Below, piece by piece: positions 22,005-49,999 of a stretch of 64,000 nt of DNA. A program made the position numbers and the translations under genes. This stretch comes from Tetramitus jugosus (Eukaryota; Protista; Heterolobosea). Within the stretch, counting starts at the first letter, position 1; every line of letters starts with the position of its first letter. The notes under the pieces are model-generated. The model was given only the letters and a program-made list of their open reading frames with translations. It had not been told where the DNA came from and ran no database searches. Location of the stretch: positions 310,001 to 374,000 of the forward strand of contig OW569391.1 of NCBI GenBank assembly GCA_937625935.1. The letters run 5' to 3'.

Positions 22005-24927
22005 CTACTTGTCGAATAGCTTCAATATGCTATCGAATAAAGGTTGATTCAAACGGCTCCGAAGTTCCTCTACAACCAAGTCATTCGGTTGCTCCTTCTT
22101 GAGCATGTCCACTTCTTCTCTTGCCTCTGACAGCCGATTCTGCTCAATCATATGTTTCAAGTTATCGTGTGCATAATGTAACCTCAGGTCAATATCTCTT
22201 GCCTTACGCCAATCATTAAGTGGTTGGTAGATATCAAGTGGTTGGTGCTTACCCTTGACACGTACTCGTGCGATCCATCTACAAATGTACCGTTCTTTCA
22301 CCTTCTCATAAGTTCCTGGCCCAATGATAATGCCAGTGCCATATCTCTGATTCAACAAGCCCAATCGACTAATGAAATGAACGCGAGCAATTAGTACATA
22401 ACAACAAGATTCGAAGATGGGAAAATAAAGTTTGAACATACCTGGCAACATTGACTCCATCTCCAAGTGCAGTGTAACTAACACGATCTCGACTACCAAT
22501 ATTTCCTACAAAGCACTTGGCTGTATTGATACCAGCCGTGATATACAATTTGGGATATCCTTTGCCGGCCCATATCTGATTCAACTTGACCATTTTACGC
22601 ACAATATCTCGTGCAGCAGCGACAGCACAAAGAGCGTGATCTTTCACAGGAACAGGAGCATTAAACAAAGCCATAATACAACCTTCCATCTAATAATACA
22701 AACAACGAAAACATTAGTGAGTATTTGAGAAGTGATCCAAAAAATAAGATTGAAGCATACATACATATTTGTCAACAACACCCTTTCTCTTGGATAGGAT
22801 GGCTGATATCTCGGTAAAATATAGCTGAAGGATATCAATAAGCACAACTGGTGATACTCGATCAAAGAATCCATCAATGTCCGAATGAAGATGAATGAAA
22901 ACTGTTGTGAGTTCCACTTGCGAAACACCCAGCTGAGCAGTCTTTTTCTGTTTCACCAACTCTCGTACGACATCCGAAGGCACAAACAGCTCAAAGGAGT
23001 TGAGCGACTTTTGAGTCTGTTCTACACTTTTTACAATTCGGTCCAACTCATACAATCGAGAAGACTTCACTGCCTTCTCCTTTGAAAAGTCCATATTGGC
23101 AATCAATTTCATCCTCCTTGAGACATGAGATAAGGTCCGCGATATCGTACAACCAATCAATATTGAAAACACCAGTGCTGCAAGTAACAACACAGCACTA
23201 ATACTCAGAGAAATTTGATTAGAATGAGTGACTGATCTGTACACAACTGCAGATTCAATTATCGAGACAACGATCCAATCTAATCCATAACTGTCTCTCA
23301 ATGCTTTCAAATCAGCAATAAATTCTCGTCCTCTTGAATCCGTAAACTTAAATTCGACCACATTCAAGTGATTCAACCGAAATGGCACGCCAAACTTCTG
23401 TGCTATGTGTTGAGCAGCTCCTTTCACTTCTGGACTGGAGTGATTAAGTGCCGATTGGCGCAACGTAGCAGATGGAGTCACTTGTACAGTCTCTCCAACA
23501 CTAGTCCCAATAATGTTCAATGACGGTTCAACAATAAAAATAATCGAATTACTGTTCCGTGTCAATAGAGCAAGGAACAATGATATGCTCTTCAGATTGA
23601 AATCCACTGTTAAGACACCACGTATGTTGCCATTAGCGTCCATGAATGTGGTGCTCATGGGAAATCGAATCGTTGGTGTAGAATTCGAAGCATAAGCCGG
23701 AGTCCACATGATTCGACCTGGATTGTTTCGAACAATCGAGTACCAAGACCTAGTAGTTGGAAGAAATGTTTGTCTATACTGCACATCACCGAAAGATGGC
23801 TCAAATGTCGTCCTAGGCACAGGATATATCCTCAAGGTGCTGCTGTTTACGGATGTGTCCGCAAGAACCAACGTAAAGGCATTTTCATCTCTGATGAAAC
23901 TATCTCTCAGCACAGAAGTGTACGAATTCGTTTCCGTTCCATAATAGATACCATCAATGTACGACGTGTTTAAATAGCTGGAAAAGAAGGAAATTTGCAA
24001 GTCCCTTGACCCAGGATAAGTGCTATTGCCTATTGGAAAGCCGATCACATTTTCCCACGTCTTGAACCGATACAACAAACTCTGTAACTTCATTGGACCG
24101 TCATTCAAAAAAGCAGTCATATGATTTGCTATGCGAAACACAACATTGATTCTGTCTTGACGCGACACTGTGTTCACACCGTGCTTATTGACAAGAAAAT
24201 TGACAATCCACACGGAACCTGCACTCAGTATCAACAACGTCAAACAAATGACAATTAATAGAAAGCTTAGAGACCATAGATACTGAGGAATCTTACACCA
24301 CTTGATCCTTCTCCGCCGCCGTGGTCCATTGAACCCTAAGAAGTGCCCCTTTTTTTGTTGAGTAAGTTCTTGAGTATCCCTGTTCATTGTATTCGTGTCA
24401 TCACTAATCACATCACTATCGTCATCATAATTGTCATTGTTGTCGTTAGCTTCCTGTAATATTGGCCAATTATGAAATCTTGGATAGGCTAAAGTTGTTG
24501 CCGCAACTTCCGTAGCGGAAGAAGCGGGGTAATTTGGAAGCTGTTGCTGATCGTTGGAGTCATCGTCGTTGTGATTAGTATTATGACTGTTCATCATAAT
24601 CATGCTCAGTGCGGCTGCTGTTGGAGGAGTTGATGATGGTGGAGCTCCTTCTGACGTTAGTAAGGGACTCACATGTGACGATGATGACGGTGCTGTCACA
24701 TTCGAGTCCAATGATGATTTTTGAGGCGTCGCCGTTGCCGCCGGGTCCAATATCGTCATGAGTTCAATGTTGTTCAAATTGCGATAGAATTGCTGTTCGT
24801 CGTCGTGGTTGTTGTTGGCTTCGGCTTGCAGGTCTCGGAATTCTTCACTACTGTCGCTAGTAGCATTGTTGGCCTTTATCAATCGGTAGTTACTATCGGT
24901 ATTGCTGTTCTTTCTCTCAAAATTCAT
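22005..24927 (-). CDS. Receptor-type class III adenylyl cyclase-like protein (TM, Cache-like domain, TM, HAMP, cyclase); introns 22690-22764 and 22369-22441
   Basis: Two TM helices around a Cache-like PTTRSWY...WTPAY...GVLTVD region, a HAMP-like linker, and cyclase motifs SDIDGF, VDKY|MEGCIMALFNAP, GINT...VGNIGS and YTALGDGVNVAS|RL. Confidence 0.85.
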
Positions 24928-25214
24928 TATCCTACTCTATCTACTTAAAAACTCACGCAACAATCGATTGTTGATTTGCTTTTAGTTAGTTATAAGATTT
25001 GGAAGAACGAACGAAAGCTTCGGACGGGGAAGAGTCTGTGATGTAACGTGGTTGCGTGGGTGCTCTTGTTTGCTCCAATATTCCAAACAAAAAATAGTTG
25101 CCGGAGAGTCAACAATGGTTACGCAAAGCTTTCTTACCCTCTTTTGGGTCAAATGCGCACCTTTCGTTTTAGATTCGATAGGCGAAGGGAATCCGTCAAA
25201 AATGTGAAAAGGTG

Positions 25215-25287
25215 TGGTCGTTGCAGGGATCGAACCTGCGACCAATGGCTTATTAGACCAACGCTCTACCGACTGAGCTAAACGACC
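25215..25287 (-). tRNA. tRNA-Ile(AAT)
   Basis: Cloverleaf GGTCGTT TA GCTCAGTCGGTAGAGC G TTGGT CT AAT AA GCCAT TGGTC GCAGG TTCGATC CCTGC AACGACC A. Confidence 0.93.
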
Positions 25288-44770: not shown

Positions 44771-44841
44771 TGCATTGACCGGGAATCGAACCCGGGTCCT
44801 CAGCTTGGAAGGCTGAGATGCTGCCTCTACACCATCAATGC
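44771..44841 (-). tRNA. tRNA-Gly(TCC)
   Basis: GCATTGA TG GTGTAGAGGCAGCAT CTCAGC CT TCC AA GCTGAG GA CCCGGG TTCGATT CCCGG TCAATGC A. Confidence 0.93.
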
Positions 44842-44865: not shown

Positions 44866-45224
44866 CATTTGTCCCCGTTTTTGTCCCCGTTCCGGGGAAG
44901 GGCTGCGGGCGTAGTTGATTGAACCAAGAAAGAGTGTATTAGAGAGTTGCAAGTTGTTCACCACGTCCAAGGAGCCCAGACAAAGAATGGACACAAACAA
45001 GAACCGTCTTCCAAAACTCGCCTCGTTAACCCGGTGCTGCACAAAGGGAAGAACCCGGTTGGGTTAACAAAATTAGCGGGCCATACCACTATCTGAAGGC
45101 GAGGAAAGCTGAAGGCGAACAAGGGCTAGTCGTCAAGAATCAATCAAGTGCGGCAAGCAACAGAGAACGAACATCCCCAAAAAGCCGCACAACTCCCAGA
45201 GAAAAGAAATAAAAACTGACGAGA
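44866..45224. mobile_element. Putative about 360-bp non-coding insertion upstream of tRNA-Gly
   Basis: Relatively GC-rich block flanked by direct repeat GAATTTTAGG (44856-44865 and 45225-45234), with internal repeats TGTCCCCGTT x2 and CTGAAGGCGA x2. Confidence 0.45.
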
Positions 45225-45387
45225 GAATTTTAGGTCACAAATAATTGCCAAAATAACATATCGCGTGAATTGATATTTCCTGGAACCGACTTCAGTACTT
45301 AATTGGTACCACATGGGTCCATTTTTGTTGCCCAGCCATTCCTTGGGACGTTATCCAAGATCTAACTAACGATTGTGTACCCTTCAG

Positions 45388-48300
45388 ATGCCAACAGAGA
45401 AAAAAATGGTTCGTTTGGTGGATGCCTCTGCTGATGGCAATGTGTCTGAAGTGTCTAGAATTCTGCGAGCAAAGACAGTTGATATAAACAATGAACGTTT
45501 GGGTGTATGTCACACATTTGAACATCTAATCACAAAAGAGCCATGTGGTAACATTTTGCTTTGATTAGGGAAAAAATTCGCTGCATTTCGCGTCAGAGAA
45601 TGGCCATGCAGCTATTGTTGAGCTGCTATTGCACGGTGGCGCCGATGTGAATGCTAAAGCAACAGTGAGTATTGAAAATATTCTGTAGTGCTCTTGTTCT
45701 ATTGTTTGACACGTTTGTGATATAATATAGAATGTATGTCGTTGATTGCTTGCTGTATTGTGGTTGGTTTAATGTATTGGTAACACATCGAATTAGGATT
45801 GCCATGCTTTGCATTTTGCAGCAAAGGATGGTCATACATCTATTGTTGAGTTGCTGCTGCAGAGTGGTGCTGATGTGAATGCTAAAACAACAGTAAGTAT
45901 AGAAGTCGTTTTCATTTTGCTCTTGTTCATTGTTTTGACACATTTGTGGTATAATAGAATGTAAGTAGTTGGATTTGAGGACTGTCGACTTTATATTAAA
46001 TTGACACTTTCTATGGAATAGAATGTAAGTTGATTGTTTGATGAATTTTTGTTGATTTTGCACTGATTAACCAATTGATAATTTAGGATTGCACTGCTCT
46101 GCATTTTGCAGTGGAGAGTGGACATTTAACTATTGTTGAGTTGTTACTACAGAGTAACTCTGTTGTGAATGCCAAAACTAAAGTTAGTATTGAATATATT
46201 TGCTGATTCACTCTTGTTCGATTGTTTGACACATTTATGTAATAGGCAGTAAGTTTTTATTGGTTGATGAATTGTTATCATTTGGCACTTTTTGACGCAT
46301 TCTATTAGGGTTGCACTGCTCTGCATTTCGCAGCAGGGTATGGCCACACAGCTATTTTTAAGTTATTGTTGCAGCATGGCGCTGATGTTAATGCCAAACC
46401 AAATGTTAGTATTGAATTTTTTTGCTCCTTCAGTATTGTCCAGTTGTTCAATTGTTAACATTTCGATATGATAGGATGTAAGTTGTAAATAGGTTAGTGT
46501 ATCGCTTTTGTTTTTACACTTGTTGACCCATCGAATTAGGAGTGGACTGCTTTACATTTTGCTTCGCAGAATGGTCATGCAGATATAGTCGAATTTTTAT
46601 TGCAGAGTGGTGCTGATGTGAATGCCAAAACAATAGTGAGTATTGAATATGTTATTCATTTTTGTTCGATTGTTCGATTTTTGACACATTTCCTATCTAA
46701 TAGAATGTAAGTCGTTGCTTATTGGGTGAATTATTGTTGATTCTCATTTGACACATTGAATTAGGGTTGCACCGCTTTGTATTTCGCGCTACAATTTGGA
46801 CACAGGAGAATTGTTGAGTTGTTAATTTTATATGGTTCTCTCGTCGATCAAGTTTTAGTAAGTATTTATTCCTCTTCGTCACCGTGCTATTTTCAATTCT
46901 AACATTTTCCTTAAGGACGAGCTCTCTATCTATCCCGAGGTGCTAGAGATGCTGGAGGACAACTGCGTATACATCTACCACAAGATGCAGGAGAGCAAGA
47001 TTCAGGCCATACACGATGTTCATCGTCAAAACTTGATAGATTGGCAGAGAGATCATGCGGCTGGACAGCAAAGAGCAGAATCTGAAATTGAAAATCTAAA
47101 GCTTCAAATAAGACAGGTGCCAAAGGAATTGAGACATATAATACAAAAAGAAACTGATTGGATTCAGAATAACAAGTTTGATACTTTTAAGTACTTGCTC
47201 AATCTCGAGGAATTTGTGGGTGCCAGGCCTGTACTAAATGATAGAGACGAACATCGATTGATGAATGAGATTGAAGAAGGCAGAAAGAAGCACTTGGAGT
47301 TGAACGACAGGATTCAGATCAAAGAAGTTACGATGAGGGAGAGAAAGGAGCTCATTCGAGCAAGGACAAACAATTTGAAAGACTTATTAACAAAGTTAGA
47401 TGATTCAATAGAAATGCGAGGTCGAAAAATAGAGAACTTGTCATGTCAACTAAGATCTGGTGATTTAGCATCAACTGAAACTAAAAACACTGAGAGGAAT
47501 AAGCAGTTCGATGAATTAATGAGGCAAAGGGAAGAATTTCACTCCTCCCTGTCTGTTCTTATTGAAAAATCGCGCTCTTATTTGGATTGTTTGAGTCAAA
47601 GTGAAAATGAGCTTAATCGATTACACACTGGCGAACTGATAGAAAAGAAAAGCAGAATTATGAAGGATGCCAAAGAGGAAATCGAGAGTGTTCGTGTATT
47701 GCAAGATTCATGTAATGGCTTGAAGCAACAAATGCAAGTCTTTGACAAAAATTCAGACGAAGCCCAACACTTGATTGAACAATTCGCAAGTAATAACAAA
47801 CAGAAGAACCAACTTTTAGTCGATTCTATAAAAATTGATTTGGAGATTGCACGGCTACTTGCAGATTCTGATGAGGATGAATCAGAAAGTAATGATGATC
47901 GAATCTCTGAACTAACCAGAGAAAAAGAGGACAAGAAACGAGAGATTGACCAGAATGAGAAAGAGAAGCGAGATTTAGAAAAGAACTTGTCCAAACACGC
48001 ACACTATGGTGAAATCAAGATGTTACTACCAAAATATCAATCAACTGATAGACGAATTAAAGATTTCACATACGTTAGAGATGCTGATGGAAGACATGGC
48101 CCAGTGAAATTGTATGAAAATATCAAAGGAGAGTTAGTGGTGTTAACGAAATTTTTACACGATGGTCAACACTGTTCATTTGAAAGAGAAGCAGCAATTC
48201 AGAAGTTGAGGCATCCCTTAATCCTTCCAATCAATACTATTTTTTATGAAGGTGATGTTGCCTATGTTGAAGCTCCATTTGTTGAAGGTAGAAGTATGAG

Positions 48301-49999
48301 AGACTGGATGAAAAATGGTAAAGAAAAAACAGGAGTTGAAATACAAAGTATGATTCGTCTTGTTGCCCAAGGCATCCAATATTTGCATAACAAGGGTGTG
48401 ATTCATGGTGATTTAACACCAGAGAGTATCTTGATGAAACAGAATGCCCATGACGAGACATGTATTCCAATCATTTGTGATTTAGAATTGATCAACAACA
48501 AAAATGTTGTATGTAAATCAACCCTTCGCGCAGGAGCCATGAAATACACCAGTCCTGAGCGTACTCTACATAACGAACAACCAAGTACAAAAGCTGATGT
48601 TTGGTCTTTGGGCATTATCATACTGGAATTACTATCATTCCCAAGAGAGATCACAGCCCACATCGCAACTGATCTGAACGAAGTTTCATCCTCATTGAAC
48701 ATCCAACAATGGAATGAGAATCTTCAAGCTGTTACTTCACTATATGAATTGTTAGTTTGTATGCTAAAGGAGGAAGTTGATGAGCGTTTTGAGATTTCGG
48801 ATGTTTTGAATCATGCGTTCTTGAACAGCACAATTGAAAAGCAAAAAGCAGCTACAACTAACACAGAGGGGAGACTGAGTCGAATGAAGCAACGCATATC
48901 AAATAAGATTCTCACGGCAGATCAGAGCACACATGTCGTGAGATTGAGCGAGACCAATCATTTGATGGAGCAATTACTCGATACTTTCTATTCGATGACG
49001 AACGACGAAATAGTTAAGAAGTTAATTGTGAGTTTTGACAGTGAAGAGGCAATTGGTTCTAGTACCCTAACGACATCACTCTACTCAACGCTATTCAATG
49101 AGGTAGCAGGAACCTTGCTCGAGAAAGTGGACAATGGTAACTTGTTCATTCCTATGTGTGACGATAGTGAAGATCAAACCAAGCAAATGGTAAATGAAGA
49201 GAAGTTCGAAGCAATGGGAAAAGCATTGATCAAGATAATATTGGATCAAAAGACTATACCATTGTGTCTCGCTCCATATTTTATGAGATACTTACTCTGT
49301 AGTGATGAGAAGGAATGTGATTTCGAAAACTCCATGATATTCATGAGAGATGTCGATATGATTGATTCAGAGTTTGGAAGAACTATGAGGCACATAATGG
49401 CCGTGAATGACTTTGATAGTTTATGTCTTAATTTTACCGTAATTGATGCGAATGACAACAGAATTGTTGACAAGTCCAACAAGAAGGAATTCATCAAGAA
49501 GAGAATACAAAAGAAACTTTTTGGTGATCGAATGAGGAATATGAAGGCTGTTAGAAAGGGTTTTAGAAGTCTTGTTGAGTTACAGCCATATCTTGACGAG
49601 ATGAATGAAAGAGATTTAGCGATACTAATTGCAGAACAACAATTTGTTGACAAGGAGTTTTTGTTGGAGAATTGTATTGATTGTAGAGGCGATGCCAATG
49701 ATTGTTCCAATTTGATTCATGTACTGCAATCATTGAACAATGAACAATTGCAATTGCTGTTATTTTTTGCAACAGGTCAAGCTGGAATGTTCAATGGAGG
49801 ATCTAATGAAGCATTGTGGAATTCCAATGATACCACACCATACAGAAGAGATTGCATTACATTCAGATTCTATGATCCATCAGAGAATGAAGATAGTTTA
49901 CCCGTAGCACACTTATGCTTCTATTGTATCGATATGCCAAAGTGTGATTCAGTTGAAATGATGAAAACGAAGCTGATTCGAGCGATAGAAGCGTTATAA
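45388..49999 (+). CDS. Ankyrin-repeat / coiled-coil / kinase-like / HECT E3 ligase, about 1263 aa. Exons: 45388-45504, 45569-45664, 45731-45733, 45797-45892, 45958-45960, 46022-46024, 46087-46182, 46246-46248, 46309-46404, 46475-46477, 46540-46635, 46704-46706, 46765-46857, 46916-49999
   Basis: Ankyrin exons such as GKNSLHFASENGHAAIVELLLHGGADVNAKAT are bounded by AG/GT and all phase 0. The last exon has a coiled coil, a kinase fold (IHGDLTPESIL, YTSPE, ADVWSLG) and a HECT C-lobe LPVAHLCFYCIDMP. Confidence 0.85.

Follow-up and report, generated by a model that had tools for sequence, protein, structure and literature searches.

Can a single codon form an exon of its own, can a protein repeat be multiplied together with such an exon, and would exons of this kind serve to vary a binding surface? 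These questions are raised by a gene on the forward strand of a 64,000-nucleotide stretch of Tetramitus jugosus DNA (the window), where ankyrin repeats had been predicted to be assembled from 96-nt exons and 3-nt microexons as part of a diversification system. The assembly comprises 26.3 Mb in 55 scaffolds with 41.3% G+C and is of soil origin (PMC11106597). The window itself is 41% G+C, eukaryotic, gene-dense and intron-poor; it includes genes for IFT140, an SMC protein, Prp31 and a Myb protein, and among named relatives the best match to its Prp31 comes from the heterolobosean Acrasis kona. On its reverse strand it also carries a tRNA-Ile(AAT) gene (25214-25287) and an open reading frame of 737 residues (22714-24927) with weak matches, at or below the cut-off, to Cache and PDC sensor domains, a bacterial-type sensor fold in a eukaryote.

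The transcript opens with exon 1 (45223..45504), delimited by the contig start and the first joint and comprising the 5' UTR and an N-cap ankyrin-like segment; a tRNA-Gly(TCC) gene lies ~380 nt upstream of the transcript start on the reverse strand (44771-44841). After intron B0 (45505..45568, 64 nt), which is inserted in phase 0 before repeat position 4, come five ankyrin exons of 96 nt, namely E1 (45569..45664, covering repeat positions 4-33 and 1-2), E2 (45797..45892), E3 (46087..46182), E4 (46309..46404) and E5 (46540..46635), and a divergent one of 93 nt, E6 (46765..46857). Their starts are spaced 228, 290, 222, 231 and 225 nt apart and they are 66-77% identical to one another. Between them lie the single-codon exons: microexon 1 (AAT, Asn, 45731..45733, repeat position 3), the tandem microexons 2a (AAT, Asn, 45958..45960) and 2b (AAT, Asn, 46022..46024), microexon 3 (GCA, Ala, 46246..46248), microexon 4 (GAT, Asp, 46475..46477) and microexon 5 (AAT, Asn, 46704..46706). 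The last coding exon (46916..49999) encodes a coiled-coil-like region, a degenerate kinase domain and a HECT domain with its catalytic Cys motif, and ends at the stop codon. The exons and triplets thus lie exactly where they had been predicted.

Each microexon has AG and GT at its flanks and a separate intron on each side. We call the upstream introns A1 (45665..45730, 66 nt), A2 (45893..45957, 65 nt), A3 (46183..46245, 63 nt), A4 (46405..46474, 70 nt) and A5 (46636..46703, 68 nt), and the downstream introns B1 (45734..45796, 63 nt), B2 (46025..46086, 62 nt), B3 (46249..46308, 60 nt), B4 (46478..46539, 62 nt) and B5 (46707..46764, 58 nt), while M2 (45961..46021, 61 nt) separates the two tandem 3-nt exons. 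The expectation of two introns per gap, and once three, held between the repeat exons; B0 and the last intron (46858..46915, 58 nt) are single and have no microexon. In the spliced model all 13 introns of the gene are GT..AG, 58-70 nt long and of phase 0, and each has a TRAC branch-like motif with its A 14-22 nt before the AG, which agrees with the earlier view that every sub-intron has a branch-like motif and acceptor of its own and that all junctions are in phase 0. With all six triplets included, the model reads as one open frame that begins at 45388 and reaches its stop codon at 49999. A donor-like GTTAGT at 46493 would define an 18-nt exon ending in a stop (46475-46497, forward strand), and this form is absent from the RNA contigs.

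The motif TAGNNNGTAWGT has 6 matches in the 64-kb window, all inside this gene, as against 0.30 +/- 0.52 (maximum 2) in shuffled sequence. Scanning both strands of the whole window for a tiny exon between two introns returned the six microexons as the only 3-nt candidates, with 0.03 expected from simulated sequence. Outside this collection of 13 introns within 1.4 kb, most genes of the window are long uninterrupted open reading frames.

Four public runs were aligned to positions 45100-47500 of the window, as assembled contigs and not as reads: X12, from the genome's own study; X1 and X2, soil metatranscriptomes of two other studies which are ~2% diverged; and X13. X12 yielded one contig of 4017 nt with zero letter differences from the genome and no coverage of the introns, and it is therefore taken as cDNA. 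Its length equals the predicted 165 + 3792 + 60 nt of UTR, coding sequence and UTR, and it ends shortly after AATAAA. In the contigs of X12, X1 and X2 the introns are skipped at their GT..AG ends, including B0 and the last intron, whose joints are seen in all three. Between the 96-nt exons, X12 reads AAT; AATAAT; GCA; GAT; AAT and X1 reads AAT; AATAAC; GCC; GAT; AAT, and X2 has AAT and AATAAC at the first two junctions with gap lengths that agree at the last three. At microexon 3 the aligner had put the G on the left exon. The triplets predicted between the exons are present in RNA, and the six microexons are real and spliced in.

The inserted letters have exactly one AG-triplet-GT source per gap, and two for the 6-mer. 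As AATAAT has no single 6-nt source, both tandem microexons are needed to produce it, and their mutually exclusive use is rejected for the major isoform, both being present in the RNA contigs. Sliding of a donor or acceptor was also ruled out as the origin of the extra letters, since shifted splice sites cannot yield them. X13, a run of the genome's own study, is DNA-like and contains several haplotypes, in which the introns are covered, exon joints are absent and the microexon letters stand unjoined. Its indels are confined to introns and the 5' UTR, many of its variants are common to the soil strains, and one of its haplotypes is close to X1 and X2, which are also close to each other. With its introns covered, its coding exons free of indels and no joints, X13 gave no sign of a processed copy or of a haplotype that differs in repeat number.

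The earlier calculation that 96 + 3 = 99 nt restores a 33-residue repeat applies to four of the five junctions; at junction 2, where both tandem microexons are used, the repeat has 102 nt and 34 residues. A 33-residue period with G-x-T-P-L-H and G-A-D-V-N motifs is the hallmark of ankyrin repeats, and the exons qualify as such: E5 aligns with DARPins and ankyrin-1/2 at a spacing of 33 residues, with T-A-L-H instead of T-P-L-H. The microexon residue had been placed at the last x of the D-x-x-G turn. By register it does fall at repeat position 3, but the canonical turn is mostly replaced, position 1 being A/T/T/P/T and position 4 G/D/D/G/E/G, so that the assignment to position 3 is derived from the register of the T-x-L-H motif. 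In designed ankyrin libraries that position is randomised (PMC4308713), and the microexon residue maps to it as had been anticipated. As the D and G of the turn are mostly replaced, the role of this residue in target contact is putative.

In the last exon, profile searches in Pfam matched PF00069 (E 5.5e-28) and PF00632 (E 3.7e-32). The HECT domain scores above the cut-off and has the conserved Cys in an LPVAHxC motif. The kinase-like domain belongs to the kinase fold family by its PF00069 match, but the features of an active kinase (VAIK lysine, H-x-D-x-K-x-x-N loop and DFG-type motif) are not all intact: its catalytic loop is without the Lys and Asn that are kept in relatives, and it has D-L-E where relatives have D-F-E. 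Given the loss of the catalytic-loop Lys and Asn, it is probably a pseudokinase. The predicted product would be one protein of ~1257 residues arranged as ankyrin adaptor, coiled coil, probable pseudokinase and HECT domain, a putative ubiquitin ligase in which the ankyrin stack probably picks the substrate. Two in-frame ATGs are available, at 45388 and 45406; the soil strains X1 and X2 have a 1-nt insertion behind 45399 which breaks the frame from 45388, and the start at 45406 is therefore likelier.

The coiled coil - pseudokinase - HECT tail (46916-49999, forward strand) is that of a widespread family with interchangeable front modules. Databases hold many kinase-HECT proteins, fronted by ankyrin repeats, TPR or no repeats, and one ankyrin version was found in the amoeba Soliformovum irregulare. 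Our searches, which took the spliced model exon by exon, returned no close homologue of the coiled-coil part, and a literature search short of most subscription journals found no paper on the kinase-HECT family. The ankyrin-kinase-HECT gene itself was found in the soil metatranscriptomes.

How such small exons may be joined can be considered from the introns around them. A 3-nt exon leaves no room for spliceosomes on its two sides simultaneously, so the flanking introns have to be removed in turn, as a study of plant microexons states (PMC8831610); the same study describes a tendency for the downstream intron to go first (PMC8831610). Here, a perfect GTAAGT donor follows five of the six microexons and only one of the five exons upstream of A introns, the microexon donors being closer to consensus, and these stronger donors fit a removal of B first. 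We propose splicing by intron definition, in which each 58-70-nt intron, with its own donor, branch motif and acceptor, would be removed separately, and the downstream intron probably first. Skipping of a microexon would require an intron of 126-194 nt, at least twice the local norm as the introns of this gene have 58-70 nt, and under intron definition the narrow range of intron size may well enforce inclusion.

The introns also carry information on the history of the repeats. Mean alignment scores are 22 between A introns and 16 between B introns, as against 2.7 between A and B, with a null of -2.7 +/- 4.5. The A introns are thus mutually homologous and so are the B introns, which means that the block of exon, A, codon and B was tandemly duplicated; duplication of the repeat unit as a genomic block, one part of the original prediction, is thereby borne out. 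The sequence of B0 has no homology to B1-B5.

Two paralogous genes of another species, a related protist with 34% G+C, encode the same order of ankyrin, coiled coil, kinase and HECT domains (L009 3503-7370 and L013 2322-6324). They come from the same sample as the closest Prp31; the Prp31 neighbourhood of the related species is not syntenic with the window. L009 has 32% identity over the coiled coil and kinase. Their ankyrin exons, overlooked by gene callers, are 96-102 nt long and start at position 3, with only one phase-0 intron of 44-62 nt between neighbours and no microexon, as predicted from sequence. In a third gene, L001, the last ankyrin intron is placed as in L009 and L013. At L001 20-152, an AG immediately precedes the G of G-N-T-P-L-H and an in-frame stop lies upstream, a configuration that points to an acceptor at the B position and an exon of 96 nt; this candidate acceptor has no pyrimidine tract, and the contig begins 56 nt earlier. 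The DNA examined of the homologues L005-L008, L011 and L012 contained no ankyrin exons.

The one-repeat exons of 96-102 nt in L009 and L013 together with the intron place in L001 make it the simplest history that B was gained and the repeats then expanded. The ancestor would have carried each ankyrin repeat on a 99-nt exon of its own, the phase-0 intron A lying between positions 2 and 3. A second phase-0 intron, B, would have been gained one codon downstream, isolating position 3 as a 3-nt exon, and the block of 96-nt exon, intron A, codon and intron B, of 222-231 nt, would then have been tandemly copied to five units, most likely via unequal crossing over. An out-of-register crossover would have deleted a 96-nt exon or doubled a microexon, and one such event may have left the two consecutive microexons, the intron M2 between them and one extra Asn in the loop. 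The 5' part of M2 is weakly B-like and its 3' part A-like, which hints, if faintly, at a hybrid of the start of B and the end of A. The gain of B in this lineage, as opposed to its loss in relatives, is a parsimony reading of two or three outgroup genes without a rooted tree. As B0 has no A partner and L001 may have a B acceptor, the B site may be older, or may have been gained more than once. On this evidence it is probable that the microexons are constitutive, share a single origin and owe their number to the expansion of the repeats, as a fixed quirk of gene structure.

Other readings have to be weighed against this one. The AG-NNN-GT motifs might be recursive or decoy sites within single introns of 126-194 nt, or chance motifs, and would then leave nothing in the mRNA. 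An AG closely preceding a GT is indeed the signature of recursive splice sites; however, the triplets are found in the spliced contigs of three samples, with all three nucleotides kept in the mRNA, so that recursive sites are refuted, and only 0.3 motifs are expected by chance. We give this reading practically no credence. A second reading is that selection maintains the double introns because they serve regulation, with the protein unchanged, delayed removal of the upstream intron for example holding the transcript back or slowing output of a potent ligase. Detained upstream introns are described for plant microexons (PMC8831610), most introns of this gene introduce an in-frame stop or shift the frame when retained, and 13 introns in 1.4 kb are conspicuous in an otherwise intron-poor window. 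That density, however, is accounted for by unit duplication, the homologues manage without intron B, and X12, X1 and X2 contain no retained-intron contig, which leaves such a role very unlikely.

In the reading from which this work started, the binding surface of an E3 ligase for recognition is varied by skipping, duplicating or swapping microexons and repeat exons, as has been proposed for LRR-ROCO genes of brown algae. Its attractions are evident: every junction is in phase 0, so that any skip keeps the frame; position 3 is a surface position randomised in designed ankyrins; one junction has gained a residue through microexon doubling; and the family swaps its N-terminal modules (ankyrin, TPR or none), with repeat number varying between paralogues. 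Between repeats, pN is also higher at putative contact positions than in the framework (0.37 against 0.18), although such variability is ordinary for any ankyrin protein, and the contact-position values (pN 0.37, pS 0.11; overall pN 0.21, pS 0.52) come from very few sites and non-independent pairs. Against it, the contigs of X12, X1 and X2, in a form of assembly that drops rare variants and minor isoforms, show one isoform, with only single-codon inclusion and with the same repeat number, repeat order and microexon residues, so that the strain variation expected under diversification was not seen, and the DNA of X13 is without joints. Two strain differences fall within microexons, AAC in 2b of the soil strains and GCC in microexon 3 of X1, and both are synonymous; with 8 of 54 possible microexon changes silent, two of two silent has a chance of ~0.02 under a flat model. 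Among the differences listed, silent and replacement changes number 9 : 1 in the ankyrin region as against 7 : 6 in the coiled coil (Fisher p 0.09), a count that leaves out ten differences, one each in E1 and E3 among them. Four of the six microexons have the same Asn codon, and a six-frame scan for spare, dead or inverted repeat exons inside the introns yielded only the six used exons. The original prediction had named a single invariant isoform without paralogue or strain variation as the outcome that would refute diversification, and this is largely what was observed. Unit duplication with one microexon doubling is ordinary repeat turnover, and we regard diversification by splicing or shuffling as unlikely.

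A broader proposal would be that in Tetramitus a family of ankyrin modules for substrate recognition is tuned through the single-codon exons at the tip of the hairpin. Skipping or doubling of these exons in some life stage or under bacterial challenge, or changes in them between paralogues, would alter the length of the loop and the targets chosen by kinase-HECT and other ligases. This is improbable as well, but if true it would be a mechanism of diversity at one-residue resolution in a predatory amoeba, and skipping, if later demonstrated, would be a new route to binding-site diversity.

Constitutive microexons multiplied by repeat expansion, the preferred reading, are of interest in their own right. 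Six RNA-verified 3-nt exons occur in one gene of a unicellular eukaryote remote from animals and plants, two of them consecutive and 61 nt apart, so that a spliceosome accustomed to short introns can reliably join single codons and a repeat protein can expand when a cassette with two introns is copied. Together with homologues without the second intron, these six paralogous cassettes provide a natural series on how minimal exons are included, as regards removal order and the limit on intron length, and on how a new intron comes to lie a single codon away from an existing one. There is also a practical consequence, as standard gene prediction would lose the microexon residues and cut four repeats to 32 residues.

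In comparison with known systems, exons of 1-3 nt have precedents, and so, separately, do exons that encode one repeat. Animal ankyrin genes have one-repeat 99-nt exons, and L009 and L013 likewise have such exons, with a phase-0 intron before the residue preceding the G of G-x-T-P-L-H; the difference here is the extra intron one codon downstream, which creates the microexon. The MEGs of Schistosoma consist mostly of microexons, several very short and symmetric, and gain variety through skipping, whereas in this gene single codons stand between long exons and the contigs give no sign of skipping. Searches that covered few subscription journals turned up neither a repeat unit equipped with a single-codon exon nor two 3-nt exons in succession, nor any exon of this kind from Heterolobosea, and no relevant paper on microexons with ankyrin, micro-exons with exon shuffling, protist 3-nt exons or ankyrin intron positions. 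A search of DNA collections with the pattern of microexon and ankyrin exon gave one match only, in a JGI metagenome (L004 5030-5113), which lies between two bacterial sugar-synthesis genes and is due to chance; a second DNA pattern had no match in viral and prokaryotic collections.

Brown algal LRR-ROCO and NB-ARC-TPR genes, to which the locus had been likened, have one repeat per exon (PMC3341825, PMC11378527). They too place repeat exons of equal phase ahead of a signalling enzyme and grow by exon duplication, and same-phase units of equal length are found here, the unit being two exons. However, the algal genes are without microexons; they contain inverted as well as spare exons, vary in repeat number, are under positive selection and produce as many as nine splice forms. 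Here no spare or inverted exons lie in the introns, repeat number is constant in X12, X1 and X2, the contigs show a single splice form and the differences between strains are mostly silent; on the features tested, the Tetramitus gene is not a member of that class.

Among animals, the glycine exon of cytohesin-1/2 has 3 nt, lies in a ligand-binding domain and is alternative, with an inclusion of 45-93% (PMC6314551), and 3-nt exons are also known from mouse Ncam and Drosophila troponin T (cited in PMC8042270). These cases likewise place one codon in its own exon, but they are single alternative cassettes, whereas the six in Tetramitus all occur in the sole isoform observed, recur with a protein repeat and include two that are adjacent. 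The host, moreover, is a unicellular discoban, and its introns have 60 nt. Plant microexons of 1-15 nt include the 1-nt exons of APC11 and VPS55 and adjacent exons of 5 and 12 nt in rice (PMC8831610). The accessible text of that study has 0 mentions of ankyrin and describes neither a tandem series within repeat units nor a consecutive 3-nt pair. As described there, though, plant microexons are likewise tiny, mostly included, missed by annotation and flanked by introns that are removed successively, and by this analogy the Tetramitus case works like a constitutive microexon of the plant type.
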